Origin: Guillardia theta CCMP2712
Taxonomy: Eukaryota > Protista > Cryptophyta
Length of the DNA stretch: 64,000 nucleotides
Assembly: GCF_000315625.1 (NCBI RefSeq)
Contig: NW_005434668.1
Location: forward strand, 180,938-244,937
Direction of reading: 5' to 3'
Part shown: positions 28,065-36,112 of the stretch, in pieces
How positions within the stretch are numbered: the stretch's first letter is position 1
Layout of the letters: each line of letters begins with the position of its first letter
The notes under the pieces: generated by a model
What the model saw: the letters and a program-made list of their open reading frames with translations, nothing else
What the model was told of the DNA's origin: nothing
The model's database searches: none
Position numbers and translations under genes: made by a program

Positions 28065-28797
28065 TATGTAGAGAATGTACAACAACTCTTTTAAGAACAG
28101 AATAAACCTTCACAAACCTAAGCTACCTTGTACCTGGACAGCATCGCTGAATACCTTGTGCCGCCTGAGCCACATGGACTAGCTATTGTATACGAATCGC
28201 ACGGCTGCCTTTAGTGCTTGCTGTCTCTTTTCTTCGCTATCCATGCACAATCCGACTGTCTTTCTGTCACTGTCTTGGGTGTCCAGGTGTGAGTCTTCCT
28301 ACACACAAGTTCATGTATGGGGAGAGTTCAAGTTACTTGATTCACACTACAAGGATACATCAGGAGACGGGTCTGAGCTGTGGGAGGATGGGAGACTGTG
28401 ACGAGTGGCTCTTCTATCATGGACTTGTCTTGTCCCATTCAATTGGTTCAATCAATTGGATAGCTGTAGTTAACCCCTTGTAAATCTCACACTCTCACAC
28501 CAGGGAAAGACAATATCGGGTGGGACAGCAGTGAAGTGTTCTCATGGTTGAGAGCATCTTCACGTCTCTGACTCCTCAAGCTTGTCGAGGCAACAAACTA
28601 AAAGAGCTCGTCCATGTTGCCCTCCTCCATGCCTGAGTGCTTCATATCTTGCCCATTTCTTCCCGCCATGGGGTCACTTTCGTGGGAAATGGGGGGTGGG
28701 GGGTAGCTTGAAGCTTTTTGATTCCCTCTAAAACACTTGTAAAGAGATACGAGTGTCACGTGACACCCTCGACTGTTCCCTGCGAAGACATCGCGCC

Positions 28798-29472
28798 ATG
28801 CAAGCTTCGATCGTTTCCTCTCCTGCCTCCAACTCCATCAGCACCGACCCTCTCCCTCTCCCACAATCTGCTCCTCCTCCCCCTCCTCCTCCCCTGCTTC
28901 TCTCCGTCACCGTATATGCTCGGGTCCTTAAAGACCCCTCCTTCGGCTCCCCTCGTGCCGTCCAGCTCACCCTCCCTGACCTCGCCCCCCTCTTCTCCAT
29001 GCGCCAGCACGACGCCGCTCGCCACCTCGTACGTCCTCCCCTTCTTCCCTCTACCTTCTTGCCCTCTATCTTCCCCTCGCTCCTCCCCCCTCGCTCCTCC
29101 CATCCTCCTAGCCTGCTCTCCCTGACGCCCCGTGTCTTTATGCAGGGCCTGTCCCTCACCAGCCTCAAGTCTGCCTGCCGTCGCCTCGGCCTCGCCCGCT
29201 GGCCCTACGACAGGAGTAGAGCAGCACGCATGGCCGGCGGCTCCCCGCCGTCTCCTTCCCCGCCCCAGCGCTCTCCCTCGCGAGCAGACTCGGAGGAGGA
29301 GATGGCCGGGGCCGAGCTCGGGCAAGACGAACAGCAGCCGCCGCTCGAGGAGGTCCGGCCGAGCTCAGGGGAGGAGGGGGCTTTCTGCGGGGAGGACGGG
29401 ATAGGGGCAGAGGGGGGATGGGTGTCAAGGTTTGTGAGGAGCAGCGAGGAGGAGATGCTAGAGGACTGGTGA
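28798..29472 (+). CDS. RWP-RK domain transcription factor, array B copy 2 (intron 29029-29145)
   Basis: Near-identical to B1 from LLSVTVYARV to the stop; different N-terminus; lacks a 24-nt segment present in B1 exon 2. Confidence 0.9.
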   Translation: MQASIVSSPASNSISTDPLPLPQSAPPPPPPPLLLSVTVYARVLKDPSFGSPRAVQLTLPDLAPLFSMRQHDAARHLVRPPLLPSTFLPSIFPSLLPPRSSHPPSLLSLTPRVFMQGLSLTSLKSACRRLGLARWPYDRSRAARMAGGSPPSPSPPQRSPSRADSEEEMAGAELGQDEQQPPLEEVRPSSGEEGAFCGEDGIGAEGGWVSRFVRSSEEEMLEDW

Positions 29473-29552
29473 GGCAGGGAGGAGGATGGGCCGTTAAACA
29501 ATCACTGGATGTACTATAAGAGATAAACAACACACTAGCCTTACAAGGAGCA

Positions 29553-32451
29553 CTAGAGAGTAGCCTCAACGATGGTGTCAGCCCCCACCCCCTCCTCTTC
29601 GTCTCTGGGGTTCGTCATACGTTGGTGGACGTCTTCCACGTACCTCCTCATCAGCGCCTGGCAGGCCTCCGGTCTCGATGCCCTCGGGTTGTAGCTCTGC
29701 TCCACGCACGCAACGCCATTGACAGCGCGACATCGCAGCCACTCGCGGATGATGGACGCTTCGCTCCCCCGCTCCACGTCATACAGGTACTGCACCGGTA
29801 GCCGCTGCCCGTTGTGCATCGTGATGGGGAGGAGGATGGTCGTGGGAGTAAGAGGGTCCTTCTCCTCTCCGACCAGCCCCAGGTAGTGTCCGCGGACGTA
29901 GGCAAGAGCAAGGGGGTCCGTACAGCACTCGCTCTTATCCAGCAGGAAGGGGATGTAGATCCCCTGGTGACCTGCGTGTCCCAAGATCTCGTTGCGGTGG
30001 TTGCGAATGTTCTGGATTCCGTACACGATGATCGGCCTCCGGAGCAGGTGGGCCAGAGCCCACACGTGCGTCTGTTCCAACGACATCTTGGGGGAGCCAG
30101 CTATCCGTACGAGCTCGGACCACTCCTTCTTCCACTGCCAGTCCTCCGCGTGGTAACCCAACAGCGCCGCCTCCCTCGCTCTGAACTCTCTCCATCGGGA
30201 GTAGAGGTCGAACGTTTTCATCACACGCACGAGGGATGCTCGCCACGCCATGTTCCTGTCTTCGATCCCAGCCAGCACAAGAGAAGCGCTGTGCAGGAGG
30301 CAGTCTCCCATCCCTCCGTTGTAGAGAGGATGCAGCTTGTGCTGTGGCAGCAGCGCAGGGCACCAGTTGATAACCGGCTCGTTCTCGTCCTCAAGAGTCT
30401 CGCGCGCCTCGCAGTCAATGATCTCGTTGAGGGCACGAGTCCTGACGTCGTGAGGCAGAGTCTGAAGTTCGCGGGGAATGGCGAAGTTGAGCTGGAAGAA
30501 AGGCATGTCCTTGGTCAAACCCGAGCCCACCGAGAGCTCAAGGTTGGCGTTGATTTCCTTAGAGATGGCTGAAGCCTCCATGACGAACTGATGACATGGC
30601 AGCCTCTTGCGAGCACAATCAGGGACAACATCTGAACATAGCAGTTTGATGATGTCACTCCTCTGATACTTCAGCGCTATGTCAACAAGCGTTTCACGCG
30701 CACGCACTGAGCCCGAGCAGGCGACGATGTTTCCTTCCTCGTTCACAAGCGTCGCTTCCTCCGCCTTGAGGCGCCTCCCAAGTTCTCCTCCATTCTTGAC
30801 GTAGGCTATGATCTTGTCCTTCTCGCCCAAGACTGCCCCAGTGCACGCATCCAGCCAAAGACTGTCGAGGTCAGCACGAGGCTGCGACCTCAACTGATCT
30901 GAGTAGTTGGAGTCTCGGCTACAGATCTTCTTCTGAGGGACGAAGGTTTCTCCAAGGACGCATGCGAGCGCTTGGCTGCTATCTCGACGAAGCGCAATAT
31001 CCACTAAAGTCTCTCCCACCTGCGGCGAAGAGGTCACGAGATGAAGCGATCGACGAAAGATCGTGACTCTCACTCTCAAACAGCCGCTCATCTGCAGGTA
31101 CTCGATGTCCTGATTGGTTAAGGATCGGCTCCTCTCACCCCCAGCTTCTAGGTAGGCAGTGATCGGGTTGGTTGTGTTGTCGTAGGCGGCCAGACAAGCT
31201 TGAAGCCAAAGTCTTCTCAGCTGGTGATTGCCAACCGCATCACTCCTGCCTCAACATCAGCTCTTGCATATCTCTCACTCAAATCTGACCTGTTGTCACG
31301 ATAGTTGTAATCTGCTGCTATGTAAGGAATACCTGCTTGCTCACACTCTTCCTGCGTCTGCCGCAGGTCCCTCCCTTCACCCTTGTGATCGTTTTGTGTC
31401 TTCTGCGAGCCAAACAGCGACTGTTCCCCCACCTCCTCCTGCGCCCGTGAATTCACATCTGAATCCTTCTTGTCTGACCCCTCCGATACGTTGGCGAGGA
31501 CGAGAGAAAGAACCTTTCAAAGACCGGTCATGAACTTTTGGGTAACGTCCGAACCCTCACCGCCTCATTGTCCCACTTCAAAGCCAAGTTTGCTAGGGTC
31601 TCTCCCTCGTTGAAACAATTCGGAAAGTTCCTGCATGAGTTCGAGTCAAAGAGGACCCACCATAAAGCAAGCTCTACCTATTCAACTCCTTCGCTTCACT
31701 TGCAAGCAGTCTCCTGCTGACCGAGCCTCCTGATTCCAACATCATGAACCGCCAGTACTCATGTTGCACACGATCAACCTCCTCTGACATATTTCTGGAT
31801 GGGCATGAGATCGCTATTCATGCACGCCTGACATGATGCGTTACGAATACAGCCTTGTACACTGTCACTCAGAGCTCTACACACCAGGCAAGCTTCAAGC
31901 CAGAGTTGTCGCACGTCTTCCTTCCCCTGGGCATGTCTCAGACCTCGAGGAACACGTGGCATCTGGAGTACGGTGACAGTGGGCTGTGGCTGAATGGCGT
32001 CCTTGGGAAGGAGAAGTAGCAAGACGTCCTGCGGTAAGAATGAAACTCCATTTCCACCGGATGGAACTGAATCAAACCTGACTATCCTGTTGGAGGGCGA
32101 TGTTGACAAGATCCAGTCCTGGGGAGAAGAACTCCACGTCGTATTTGGCATTTAAGGTTGCTACTTCAGAATCCTTGCAACAGTATCAGGCAACAACAAA
32201 CAAAGGCAGCGAAGTTGCTACCCTCATTCTCCGCATCGCGTTGCCGCCAGCAGCCAAATATCTGATTCGGCTGTCAGTTCTCTTGCAGCGAACATACTCA
32301 AACAATCTACCTCTCGACAGGATGCGTCTCATTCCTCCATGCAGCCACGCAGGCATCAAGCCAGAAGTCCTCCATGCTGCAAGGGGCAGATGAGTGGGGT
32401 ATGAGGTTAAAACTTCACGAATTTGTGTAGAGCGAGCTTGAACCTGCTCAT
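29553..32451 (-). CDS. ZRANB1: TRABID/ZRANB1-like OTU deubiquitinase with four AnkUBD repeats
   Basis: A20-type OTU motifs VINW, LYNGGMGDCLLHS (catalytic Cys), SLEQTHVWALAHLLRRPIIVYG, GIYIPFL and PLALAYVRGHY (catalytic His). Upstream repeats of (F/L)WLxAC...Y..GG...R.L...G.TLV.IAL. Start tentative (MSS|MEDF). Confidence 0.88.
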
Positions 32452-33549
32452 GTTGAGAGAGGAGAGTTTAACGTTGCCACTTCACTTTAATGTCTGCATC
32501 TGGATGCAAGGTGTCAATGATGAACCAGCCATGCTAGGGTGAACTCACACACAGCAAGGAGGAAATAAACCGTGTAGAGGCAGGACAGGATGATTGCTGT
32601 GTCAACAATCAAAAAATGGTGAAGAAGGCCTCGCCGATCTGTAACAACTGAGAGCAATTAGAAACCAACAGAGATGTTGCTCAAAGTAGTAATCACTGGG
32701 ACTGTCTTGAATTCCAGACTTACGAAGCTGCTTTCAACCTGATTTTGCTTTTGTCCTCCCTGTCTACTTGACAACTCTCCCTTACTCCCTCGCATTCCTA
32801 AGCTCTCTATCTCTCCATCTCTCCTCCTCCCCCCATCCCTCTCCTATCTCTCTCCTCCTGCATCCTCCTCTCTTTTCTGAACCTCCACCGCCGTCAACAC
32901 ACCATCCCATTGCCCCTTCGGCCTCTCTCAGCTGCTGAATCAACCATTGAGCCGAAACAAGACTTTTTAGATAATAACTCATTAGTACTATCGTGGTGTT
33001 ATAAAGTTTTACAAAAAAAACAGATAGGTACTCTGCTGAGTGTATCATACAGTTGTAAATCAATATAATTAAATTAAAAAGACGGACTTATTGCTTGACC
33101 ATAACATAATGCTTCTATTTCGATAATAAGTAAAATACTTATGTACTAACTAAATGATAAAATGATTTAAAAAACATGAGGCGGACTCTGTGCAAGTCTG
33201 TCCTGGCTCCAGTCGCTGCAGGATGTCTTCACAGGCGATCCGATTCGAAATGTAGACAGAAGGAGCAAGAGTTGTTCCATTGATTTATTCATGAACGAAA
33301 TCTACACGAACTGTCCTACACATAACATCTCAAGATCTGAAATCCCCTAGCATAATACGCTTGGCAAGAAAATCTCAACATCCATAGAGATCAAACCATT
33401 AACCAAAAAGAATCTGAAGATATGATTTTCGATCTTTAGCAGCTTGATATCAGCTTGTTCACCCCAGCAAAGCAGCATGCCACCGTGCTCGCCAACCCCC
33501 CAATGAGCAAATTGAATGAGTTGACTGGCAATTTTCAGTTCCGGCAGAT

Positions 33550-36112
33550 TTATCCGCCCTTAGCAAGAACCTTAATCTTGTCAACACATTCTTGGAACTT
33601 GGTCTCCATGGTCTGCAGATCTCGGACCAAGACCTTGAGGCGCTCAGGCTCAGTGCGCATCTGCTGGACACGGGCAGCCATGTGCTGCACGTTGTTGTTC
33701 CTGCGGCGCTGCTGGAGTGTTCGGCGGATCAGCTCGACAGCAGAGCTCATGTCTTGTGCCGCAGCATCCTCCTTGGCAATCTTGGAGGTTGGCTCATCTC
33801 CCTTGCCACTCTTGAGACCGAACTGGCGGCGTCCGAGACGCTTGTACACACCATTCATGCGAATGAGCTCGTCGTGGGTGCCACGCTCGACAATGCGGCC
33901 ATTCTGAAGAACGACGATCTGATCGGAATCGACGATGGTAGACAAGCGATGTGCAATCACGATGGATGTACGGCCAACCATAAGTCTGTCCAAAGCCTCC
34001 TGCACAAGCTTCTCGTTCTCAGAATCGAGAGCAGAGGTGGCCTCATCGAGAAGAAGAATCTTGGGATCCTTGAGAACAGCCCTTGCAATGGCAATTCTCT
34101 GCCTCTGGCCTCCTGAAAGCATAACACCACGCTCTCCCACCTGAGACTTGTACGCATCAGGAATACGCATGATGAAGTCATGCGCATTCGCCATCTTGGC
34201 AGCCCTCTGTACGTTCGCCATGGTTGCTCCCTCACTTCCATACATGATGTTCTCCTCAATGGACATAGCAAACAGAACCGGTTCCTGAGAAACGAGACCA
34301 ATCTGCATTCTCAGCCACTGGGGATCGTATGTGCGGATGTCAACTCCATCCACAAGCACGCGACCCTTCTCAACATCATAGAAGCGCGAAACAAGGGAGA
34401 TGACAGTCGATTTTCCTGATCCTGAAGGTCCGACAATAGCCATGGTCTTGCCAGGAACGACATCGCAGCTGACTCCATCAAGAACCTCCGCATCAGGACG
34501 GGAGGGATAATGGAAATGGACGTTGTCAAAGGTCACACGACCCTCAATGCCATGGGGAGGGATGATACCACCATCGTAATTCACACGTGGAACACGGTCG
34601 AGCAGCTCAAACACACGCACTGAAGCACCAATAGCTTCCATGAACTGTGGGAAAATCGACAAAAGAGACTGGAAAGCGAACACAGTCTGAAGAGCGAAGA
34701 GCATGTAAGAGATCAAATCGCCAGTAGTGATCACACCAGCGAAAATCATCTGACCACCATACCAAAGAGCAAGCAAGATGCATGCATCAGAAGCCATCGA
34801 AGAGATTGCTCCCAAACCACCAGAGATCCATGCACGCTTCTTGGCAACGAAGTAAGACACATTGATCTTGTCAGAGTAGTTCTGAATCTCCGCCTCCTCA
34901 GTAACGAACGACCTCACAGTACGGATGTTGTCAAGCACTTCAGCAGCCTTGGAACCAGCACCGGCAAGAGCCGAAAGCTCCTGCTCAGTGAGAACTTTCA
35001 TGCAAGTTCCCTGAAGGAACATCACAATCAAGATCACTGGGGTGACCGACAGAATAACCAAAGTCAACTGCCAAGAATACCTGATGAAGAGAGTTAGATC
35101 CAATCTATGTCGATACAATGCAGATGCTCCTCACCAGAAGCAGATGACGAATCCAATAATAACTTGGACGGAGGGAATGAACCAGCCAACCAAGTTCGAA
35201 GTAACAACAGACTGGATAACTTCCGTATCGGTCGAAAGACGATTGAGGAGCTCTCCAATGCGGACAGTGTCGAAGAAAGCCACATCCTGGCGAAGCATGT
35301 TTCTCAAAACCAAAGACCTCAGGCGGCAAGAGCAACGGGAAGCTGCAATCGTGTACAGGACCCCCGAAAAGAGAGCCAACAATGCATCGGCAATGTAGAT
35401 GGCCAAGAGCACGAAAGTGATCCAGTTAAGCTGGTCTTGACGCATCGACAAGTCGGAGAAACGAACGATGTCAACAAGCCACCCGACGAAGAAGTTCTGA
35501 GACATGTTAAGGAAGGCACAAATTGCCGAAAGGAAGGTGGCGGAAATGACCAAAGGGAGCTCAGGTTTGCCGAAGCGCAGCAACCTAAGAGGTGTAATCT
35601 GCTTAGGTTGCTCATCTTCCTGCTCTTGCTGCAAAGCATCACGTCAAGACTCAAGTCATAAATTGGAGAATTCGCACTACCTGAGAGAGCTCAACATCGG
35701 TCTCTCCTTCATCCTGGGAGTATTCCTTCTTCTCATCACGAGACCAGTCGGACTCAGATTCACTCTGGCCGACCTTCTCGTAACGCTGGAATCGAAGTCA
35801 GACATCTTATTGTTCCAGGATAGCACAAGAAAAATGCATTTCGGCATCAAAATTCCATACATTGTCTGGATTAAACAGGAGGAAGCAACATTTACATCAA
35901 CTCGTCGCTTTTAGAGACAAAGGATCAAAGGACAAAAAATGCCACGAGACCGAACACTTTCCTCGTGCACAATTTTCGTTTCCAACATCAACAAGTGCAA
36001 AAGTTGTGAGGATGGGGAACCATATCCAATGGTATGAGAAAACTTCTCGTTCTATGCATTGTCTCTCCCCATCGGCGCATCTCACCTTCCCTGTCTTCGC
36101 TTCGGTCGGCAT
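33550..36112 (-). CDS. ABCB-family half transporter (TMD-NBD; TAP/ABCB10/ABCB27-like)
   Basis: Walker A GPSGSGKST, Q-loop VSQEPVLF, signature LSGGQRQR, Walker B ILLLDEATSALD, H-loop IAHRLST; TMD motif QDVAFFD...GELLNRLSTD. First exons MPTEAKTGK|RYEKVGQ...ELSQ|QEQ. Confidence 0.93.

Follow-up and report, generated by a model that had tools for sequence, protein, structure and literature searches.

A predicted TRABID-family deubiquitinase with four AnkUBD modules and no NZF zinc fingers in the cryptophyte alga Guillardia theta

The window analysed here (the whole stretch of 64 000 nucleotides, positions 180 938–244 937 of the forward strand of contig NW_005434668.1, G. theta CCMP2712) contains at 29553–32451, on the minus strand, a real, expressed gene for a TRABID-family enzyme with four AnkUBDs (R1–R4) and no NZF, whose deubiquitinase activity is predicted from sequence. 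The gene is already present in NCBI and UniProt (GUITHDRAFT_132964; ‘hypothetical protein’ or ‘ubiquitinyl hydrolase 1’) and is assigned here as a single-copy gene for a predicted 780-residue cysteine deubiquitinase that belongs to the TRABID branch within the A20-like OTU family. No second AnkUBD locus was found in an exon-by-exon scan of the organism's own genome, which at this gene reported R4 only. A natural protein with three extra AnkUBDs detached from the catalytic core and no NZFs amounts to a ready-made experiment. It asks whether an AnkUBD can act as an autonomous ubiquitin reader, how accessory domains are exchanged in the evolution of deubiquitinases and whether animals are the only organisms with a TRABID-type enzyme for atypical chains. 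The placement of the TRABID branch in a cryptophyte alga poses the choice between an ancient origin with losses and an old gene transfer.

The coding sequence extends exactly from stop codon to ATG and comprises 12 exons (2343 nt) separated by GT–AG introns of 44–67 nt. Exon coordinates were fixed by a codon-by-codon walk against P0001, a 780-residue transcriptome-derived protein of G. theta (UniRef A0A7S4UJ50), and the walk agrees with it at every codon, carrying at most two bases across a junction. P0001, rather than a hand-spliced sequence, was the protein analysed. Each of the 11 coding introns is seen as a joint in contigs of three runs (X1–X3) from three independent studies, runs that we take to be RNA; the contigs carry the whole spliced message and bound both transcript ends, with a 5′ reach at least to 32949 (run X1). 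The NCBI model of the gene is wrong at three places; the 45-nt intron 31927–31971 after coding exon 5 is retained in that model and spliced out in the run contigs. The start-codon exon also carries an in-frame uORF of five codons ending with TGA at 32484–32482, and because of this stop the reading frame cannot extend upstream. Seven upstream ATGs are present in the leader. The gene is built as follows.

32549..32949, minus strand: 5′ UTR exon (covered by a run X1 contig and joined to 32499)
32500..32548, minus strand: 5′ UTR intron, 49 nt (joint 32499 to 32549 in all three contig runs)
32444..32499, minus strand: start-codon exon (ATG 32451–32449; coding part 32451–32444)
32311..32376, minus strand: coding exon 2 (this and all following coding exons from the P0001 codon walk and contig joints)
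32222..32261, minus strand: coding exon 3
32078..32173, minus strand: coding exon 4
31972..32028, minus strand: coding exon 5
31885..31926, minus strand: coding exon 6
31779..31827, minus strand: coding exon 7
31678..31729, minus strand: coding exon 8
31561..31630, minus strand: coding exon 9
31290..31513, minus strand: coding exon 10 (end of R2; greater part of the long linker)
31074..31245, minus strand: coding exon 11 (first two thirds of R3)
29553..31019, minus strand: coding exon 12 (end of R3, R4, OTU and stop codon 29555–29553)
29494..29552, minus strand: short 3′ UTR (contig ends at 29494–29497 in X1, X2 and X3)

The four tandem AnkUBD modules proposed in the initial annotation are recovered by the Pfam AnkUBD profile (PF18418), which matches four stretches of P0001 with a total of 77.7 bits (whole-protein E value 7.9e-22). 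Each repeat also matches when scanned singly (E values of 1e-3 to 1e-5, over profile positions of about 17–95 of 97). Against the curated cut-off of 26.1 bits, the whole protein and R2 alone score above, and R1, R3 and R4 alone below; taken together, the four-stretch profile match is far beyond chance. The three repeats that precede R4 were at issue in particular, and all three have both a profile score and a predicted five-helix fold.

31993..32372, minus strand: AnkUBD R1, residues 5–82 (exons 2–5 with introns; 20.0 bits alone, profile positions 19–89)
31478..31911, minus strand: AnkUBD R2, residues 95–172 (exons 6–10; 32.0 bits alone)
31230..31477, minus strand: long acidic linker, residues 173–240, predicted to be disordered (pLDDT under 50)
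31330..31310, minus strand: conserved linker motif IPYIAAD, residues 222–228 (from comparison with the orthologue)
30930..31229, minus strand: AnkUBD R3, residues 241–322 (exons 11–12; 21.2 bits alone)
30600..30866, minus strand: AnkUBD R4, residues 344–432, directly N-terminal to the OTU (24.8 bits alone; aligns to the 3ZRH AnkUBD)

The linkers R1–R2, R2–R3 and R3–R4 span about 12, 68 and 21 residues, and pairwise identity among the four repeats is only 26–33%. No canonical ankyrin family of Pfam (Ank, Ank_2 and relatives) matches the whole protein or the single repeats at E ≤ 10. The short exons of R1 and R2 scanned singly against Pfam gave no match, since every repeat is spread across three to five exons. 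The absence of NZF zinc fingers, also proposed initially, is borne out: Pfam zf-RanBP/NZF (PF00641) has no match in the whole protein even at E ≤ 10, and the N-terminus is fixed by the contigs and the in-frame stop. No NZF exons lie upstream of the ATG exon; there is no space for them, given the in-frame stop and the poly(A) site of the gene that comes next in that direction.

The catalytic part is most similar to the human TRABID AnkOTU structure 3ZRH, its best solved relative (E value 4.6e-60, 206.8 bits, aligned over residues 342–747). Weaker sequence matches were obtained to Cezanne/OTUD7B (4.8e-34, 120.8 bits), A20 (3e-19, about 72 bits) and VCPIP1 (19 bits), and a Foldseek search recovers 3zrh, A20 and Cezanne through their OTU domains. 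The following elements were located.

29616..30599, minus strand: A20-like OTU domain, residues 433–760 (3ZRH, Cezanne and A20 matches; Foldseek 3zrh E value 2.4e-26)
30308..29883, minus strand: Pfam OTU core, residues 530–671 (46.5 bits)
30300..30302, minus strand: codon of catalytic Cys532, aligned to Cys443 of human TRABID in 3ZRH
29886..29888, minus strand: codon of catalytic His670, aligned to His585 of human TRABID in 3ZRH

The OTU is therefore intact, as had been read from the letters alone, with its Pfam score and both catalytic residues, and the TRABID-like label holds in view of 206.8 bits to TRABID versus 120.8 to the next A20-like OTU. R4 and the OTU align continuously to the AnkUBD-OTU of 3ZRH (443 Foldseek columns, with a TM score of 0.69 normalized by target length). 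By these alignments, R4 is the positional counterpart of the animal AnkUBD, and R4 with the OTU forms the predicted enzyme core, the same kind of AnkUBD-OTU unit as in human TRABID. An OTU with Cys and His, an AnkUBD adjoining it and a closer relationship to TRABID were thus all found; the three N-terminal NZFs were not.

The AlphaFold model contains four five-helix modules with pLDDT of about 76–95 (about 90 for R1 and 76–86 for R3, each with five helices), connected by linkers with values under 50. The modelled R2 superposes on residues 257–340 of 3ZRH with a Z score of 14.8 and an r.m.s.d. of 3.1 Å for 84 residues (32% identity), and the next match after the TRABID AnkUBD in the exhaustive aligner has a Z score of 8.4. 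R2 also superposes on Atlas row 4 with an r.m.s.d. of 1.8 Å over 79 residues, and the nearest Atlas shapes are AnkUBD clusters. Foldseek gives a weak result for the R1–R2 model (best match 3zrh, E value 2.6e-3), whereas that of the exhaustive aligner is clear. A two-ankyrin-repeat fold like that of TRABID residues of about 257–340 is thus predicted, by superposition for R2 and by the five-helix pattern for all four modules. A protein-language-model search with the array returned generic ankyrin clusters only. The pTM of the model is 0.49, with no confident packing of R1–R3 on the core.

Hanusia phi and an uncultured marine lineage (Tara Oceans contigs) have orthologues with the same four repeats. 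Identity to the marine orthologue is 58% for R1, 59% for R2, 48% for R3, 43% for R4 and 64% for the OTU core, so that R1 and R2 come close to the OTU core in conservation; the linkers are at 8–21%, with 21% for the long linker outside IPYIAAD. These comparisons indicate purifying selection on all four modules across cryptophyte lineages. In the domain tree every repeat position forms its own clade across lineages; R4 groups with the animal AnkUBDs (support 96/90) and R1–R3 form a separate group, which suggests that R1–R3 may have diverged in function. The protein tree places the cryptophyte clade as sister to all sampled animal TRABIDs.

Among the best 150 matches of an exhaustive profile search (198 weaker ones lie below), the genuine multi-AnkUBD proteins are all of the cryptophyte type, and the animal matches have one AnkUBD each, mostly with NZFs. 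Among 38 long animal representatives, 31 contain zf-RanBP and all 38 a single AnkUBD. As far as the relatives can be named, they are otherwise only from animals, and another word search that started from the marine orthologue added no other full-length relatives. Five other proteins with multi-stretch AnkUBD matches were examined and rejected as arrays: in moth P0012 a single half-domain recurs in identical copies along with out-of-frame filler, P0101 and P0122 each contain one domain interrupted by a retained intron, and P0011 and P0128 are pieces of cryptophyte orthologues that still include introns. The architecture is rare rather than common, and the sequences searched place four AnkUBDs without NZFs on a TRABID-type OTU only in cryptophyte-type proteins. 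We found no paper in the literature that describes a four-AnkUBD and OTU architecture without NZF, in line with the initial annotation, whose author had not seen it described; the protein itself is already a database entry.

Positions 317 and 332 (3ZRH numbering) we take to belong to the ubiquitin-contact surface of the AnkUBD. His317, present in 100% of 77 animal AnkUBDs, is not retained in any of the repeats; R1 and R2 carry Asn at this position, and R3 and R4 an acidic residue (Asp or Glu). Leu332 is kept in R1–R3 and is Cys in R4. Every repeat keeps 12–15 of the 20 animal-conserved positions, R2 the most.

In TRABID, the AnkUBD is a ubiquitin-binding domain on which full activity and the K29/K33 preference depend; polyubiquitin is bound by the NZFs, which sit on flexible linkers, and NZFs and AnkUBD together place TRABID on ubiquitin-rich puncta (PMC4386031, PMC7948964, PMC3705208). 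More generally, small ubiquitin-binding modules beside or upstream of the catalytic domain of a deubiquitinase increase its activity and make it selective among chains (PMC3705208, PMC4386031). By analogy, we give an even chance to a protein in which a core of R4 and the OTU is supplemented by R1–R3 as low-affinity ubiquitin-binding modules that provide avidity in place of NZFs. R4 would be the ubiquitin-binding site beside the active centre and would position the chain as in TRABID. R1–R3, on flexible linkers, would simultaneously engage several ubiquitins within a single chain and so recruit the enzyme to polyubiquitin and hold it there, which is the job of the three NZFs in animal TRABID. 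That R1–R3 read polyubiquitin instead of NZFs is plausible on this analogy. Two results temper this role, put forward initially as a polyubiquitin reader or chain-length ruler: the grouping of R1–R3 apart from R4 and the animal AnkUBDs, and the replacement of His317 in every repeat. Also counting against such a reader are the Cys of R4 at position 332, the single-repeat scores of R1, R3 and R4 below the Pfam cut-off and the fact that ankyrin pairs are general protein-binding scaffolds. The linkage that is cut or read is not inferable from sequence.

R1–R3 could instead be AnkUBD-derived modules that no longer bind ubiquitin and recruit substrates or partners (e.g. an E3 ligase), leaving R4 alone to position ubiquitin, which we regard as possible, if somewhat doubtful. 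The 96/90 split that sets R1–R3 apart from R4 and the animal AnkUBDs would fit such a role, as would the loss of the His that is invariant in animals, but that His is lost also in R4, the copy presumed to bind ubiquitin, so this loss does not separate R1–R3 from R4. The conservation of R1 and R2 above that of R4 is as expected for a specific partner interface, and the IPYIAAD motif is a hint of further docking of partners. Binding of diverse proteins is common among ankyrin folds (PMC7826745). On the other side, every repeat retains most of the animal-conserved positions, with R2 retaining the most, and AnkUBD is the sole Pfam ankyrin family that matches. It is improbable that R1–R3 act within the same molecule by folding back on the OTU or R4 in a regulatory or autoinhibitory manner, or that they bind a ubiquitin-like modifier. 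The flexible linkers would allow folding back, and neighbouring elements are known to regulate the active site of A20-like OTUs; the low pTM, the linker confidence and the lack of confident R1–R3 packing on the core speak against it, and we know of no precedent for it in TRABID.

An origin of the array in an assembly or gene-prediction artefact, or in contaminating animal DNA, might be suspected given the errors of the NCBI model and given moth P0012, another multi-stretch match that does look like such an artefact. The spliced message in contigs of three studies, the independent transcriptome protein identical to the exon walk, the low mutual identity of the repeats and the four-repeat orthologues in H. 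phi and Tara Oceans contigs all argue to the contrary, and the short introns and the location on a scaffold of 1.2 Mb are in keeping with the host genome; this reading is already refuted for practical purposes.

A stronger form of the polyubiquitin-reader model, in which the cryptophyte lineage built a multivalent reader by multiplying the AnkUBD and the fixed-order array reads an atypical linkage or a minimum chain length, is a speculative extension that we consider unlikely. If true, it would be an independent alternative to the animal 3×NZF module, the AnkUBD would bind ubiquitin as an independent domain even apart from the OTU, and the array would offer a natural tandem reagent for atypical chains.

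Among known systems, the protein is closest to animal TRABID/ZRANB1, its best match in sequence and fold, with which it shares an A20-like OTU with catalytic Cys and His and an AnkUBD directly N-terminal to it. Animal TRABID has three N-terminal NZF (RanBP2-type) fingers and one AnkUBD, whereas the cryptophyte protein has four AnkUBDs and no NZF, is only about 30–33% identical to animal TRABIDs and comes from an alga. To our knowledge, every AnkUBD described before is a single copy joined to an OTU domain. Cezanne/OTUD7B and A20/TNFAIP3 have the enlarged OTU fold in common with it but lack an AnkUBD, carry other accessory domains and match clearly less well in sequence. Generic ankyrin-repeat proteins (DARPins and ankyrins) resemble the modules in the fold of helix–turn–helix pairs (Z scores of 6–8) and in language-model features, but the cryptophyte modules are isolated two-repeat units on linkers and not one stacked solenoid. 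In the proposed principle, accessory ubiquitin-binding domains that set activity and specificity, the protein would resemble OTUD1 (UIM) and TRABID (3×NZF), with the difference that the module multiplied here is the ankyrin-type domain itself.

A large minus-strand frame at 29553–31091, in which Pfam scored an OTU domain and one AnkUBD, was used in a word search that returned P0001 (UniRef A0A7S4UJ50), a 780-residue protein from the MMETSP transcriptome of the cryptophyte alga Guillardia theta, with 100% query coverage and 97% identity. The 3% mismatch arises because an 18-codon in-frame intron is read through in the query. A codon-by-codon walk against P0001 resolved the minus-strand interval 32451–29553 into 12 coding exons (2343 nt in total) and 11 coding introns of 44–67 nt, all GT–AG. 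No mismatches were found, and the extent (29553–32451) and hand-splicing proposed in the initial annotation are therefore exact. P0001 was the sequence used in every whole-protein analysis.

Transcript data for the region 28800–34000 were taken from contigs of three runs, presumed to be RNA, from three different studies. The contigs contain joints at 11 of the 11 coding introns, and the runs contain ∼0.6–0.7 of the sampled words, as expected from spliced message. The message extends from ∼32949 to ∼29494 (minus strand), with an extra 49-nt intron in the 5′ leader at 32500–32548. The gene is deposited as XP_005840187.1/GUITHDRAFT_132964 (‘hypothetical protein’) at NCBI and as L1JXX2 in UniProt; the NCBI model (782 residues) departs from the sequence of the run contigs at three points.

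32444–32451, minus strand: first coding exon, missing from the model
31927–31971, minus strand: in-frame 45-nt intron, retained in the model
exon 10, minus strand: 10 residues missing from the model

An in-frame TGA at 32484–32482 (minus strand) lies within the same exon as the ATG, so that the frame cannot extend upstream. Together with the poly(A) site (∼33271) of the next same-strand gene upstream, an ABCB-type transporter, this stop leaves no space for exons encoding NZFs (RanBP2-type zinc fingers) in this transcript, in keeping with the proposed absence of NZFs. The ∼450-nt 5′ leader (32452–32949, minus strand) carries eight upstream ATGs, one of them belonging to an in-frame five-codon uORF (32499–32482, minus strand) that immediately precedes the true start; this may point to translational control. 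The transporter (33271–35634, minus strand) is a half transporter (ABC_tran, 114.9 bits; ABC_membrane, 95.3 bits) with a depth in the run contigs far above that of the deubiquitinase gene. An ORF with an RWP-RK domain (28753–29469, plus strand; Pfam, 37.8 bits), convergent with the deubiquitinase 3′ end, has zero depth in the runs examined.

Pfam recognizes AnkUBD (PF18418) in four stretches of P0001, R1–R4 (whole-protein score 77.7 bits, E = 7.9e-22), and an OTU domain (46.5 bits), which bears out the proposed four modules plus OTU; the scan returned no other family and no RanBP/NZF finger at E ≤ 10. Each repeat covers positions ∼17–95 of the 97 in the profile. The repeats are 26–33% identical to one another and share with animal AnkUBDs a W-L-x-A-C start, a G-G turn, an Arg and a T-L-V-x-L-A helix, all invariant in the alignment.

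Modules of P0001: score when scanned alone (PF18418 curated cut-off 26.1 bits) and identity of the Guillardia protein to the marine orthologue, a four-repeat relative in an uncultured marine eukaryote
R1, residues 5–82: 20.0 bits; 58% identity
R2, residues 95–172: 32.0 bits; 59% identity
R3, residues 241–322: 21.2 bits; 48% identity
R4, residues 344–432: 24.8 bits; 43% identity
OTU core: 64% identity
Linkers: 8–21% identity

The top solved-structure match is human TRABID AnkOTU (3ZRH; E = 4.6e-60, residues 342–747), with OTUD7B (4.8e-34) and A20 (∼3e-19) far weaker, and Cys532 and His670 align with Cys443 and His585 of TRABID. The core of the protein, R4 and the OTU domain, is thus an intact TRABID-type AnkUBD–OTU. 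Elsewhere in the Guillardia genome (669 contigs, 87.1 Mb) there is a single A20-like OTU match, at G000:C38:237034-237558, which is 27% identical to the OTU portion of the protein (E = 4e-6).

AlphaFold modelled the full-length protein with a mean pLDDT of 75. The four modules are predicted with an identical five-helix pattern at pLDDT ∼76–95, and the intervening segments 82–90, 170–239 and 316–340 fall below 50, which gives a beads-on-a-string picture. Foldseek placed 3ZRH first for the whole model (E = 2.4e-26), followed by A20 and Cezanne. In an exhaustive structural comparison of a separate R1–R2 model (pLDDT 84), R2 superimposed on TRABID residues 257–340 with a Z score of 14.8 and an r.m.s.d. 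of 3.1 Å (84 residues, 32% identity); the next match was an unrelated ankyrin (Z = 8.4). The closest shapes in the ESM Atlas are animal AnkUBD clusters. As modelled, the repeats would fold as AnkUBDs, as originally suggested. The protein carries, besides its core, three additional conserved AnkUBD-fold modules on flexible linkers, and no NZFs.

All four repeats are also present in Hanusia phi (762 residues, 86% identical) and in the marine orthologue, which is known from metagenome contigs of Tara Oceans and other sources (826/870 residues, 51 member sequences; 46–50% identical to Guillardia, depending on the comparison); further sources contain shorter fragments. The module and linker identities show that selection acts on all four repeats, and most strongly on R1 and R2. 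The marine gene (L004:4409–7000, plus strand; also contigs L005 and L006) is one unbroken reading frame, compared with the 11 coding introns in Guillardia, and one sequence in its cluster carries an archaeal MAG label, probably because that bin is contaminated. The motif IPYIAAD (residues 222–228; 31310–31330, minus strand), shared by Guillardia, Hanusia and the marine lineage within an otherwise unconserved linker predicted to be disordered, may be a docking motif.

In the domain tree, which has a short alignment and long branches, sequences from different lineages group into one clade per repeat position (support 95–98; 85 for R2), and R1–R3 are split from R4 and the animal AnkUBDs (96/90). 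This points to R4 as the equivalent of the animal AnkUBD and to one early copy as the source of R1–R3. In a tree of AnkUBD plus OTU the cryptophyte clade (100/100) joins the sampled animals at an unresolved base and is nested within no sampled animal group.

An AnkUBD profile search against 1.84 billion cluster representatives gave 348 proteins at E ≤ 0.001, and among the best 150 of these only cryptophyte-type proteins are truly multi-copy; two-copy proteins with weak scores may occur elsewhere, among the lower-ranking 198. In P0012, a moth ‘hypothetical protein’ (Choristoneura fumiferana, KAI8423366.1), one and the same half of an AnkUBD recurs four times, the copies being separated by identical filler that is out of frame; this is probably a tandem mis-assembly or gene-model artefact. 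In the remaining multi-stretch matches, a retained intron divides a single domain. All 38 long animal representatives have a single AnkUBD and 31 of them have NZFs, and the divergent matches that bear a name are animals (sponge and bryozoan). An artefactual origin of the Guillardia array is excluded for practical purposes, and the four-AnkUBD architecture is confirmed as real and expressed, and as both conserved and rare. Databases already contain the protein, which is, as far as searchable, undescribed in the literature: none of the top-listed literature matches for TRABID or ZRANB1 in Guillardia or cryptophytes mentions either name, and the papers searched that mention AnkUBD describe no tandem array, so that the claim of an undescribed architecture holds to that extent.

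In TRABID, the AnkUBD binds ubiquitin and is required for full activity and K29/K33 preference, three NZFs on flexible linkers bind polyubiquitin, and both together locate the enzyme on ubiquitin-rich structures (PMC4386031, PMC7948964, PMC3705208). By analogy, R4 would position the ubiquitin chain at the active site and R1–R3 would bind ubiquitin multivalently and with low affinity, holding the enzyme on chains, an NZF task performed by a different fold. We give this reading about even odds; a putative chain-length ruler would be one particular form of it.

The separate branch of R1–R3 counts against this reading, as do the residues at two positions: His317, invariant in 77 animal AnkUBDs, is replaced by Asn in R1 and R2 and by Asp or Glu in the other two repeats, and Leu332 is kept in R1–R3 and is Cys in R4. 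Since R4 shares the replacement of His317, this change does not set R1–R3 apart. Both positions lie within what we take to be the ubiquitin-contact surface. The main alternative, that R1–R3 bind partner proteins or substrates, is a serious but lesser prospect, and a cis-regulatory role is improbable. Whereas the NZFs of TRABID are absent, the AnkUBD–OTU core places the Guillardia protein in the TRABID branch.
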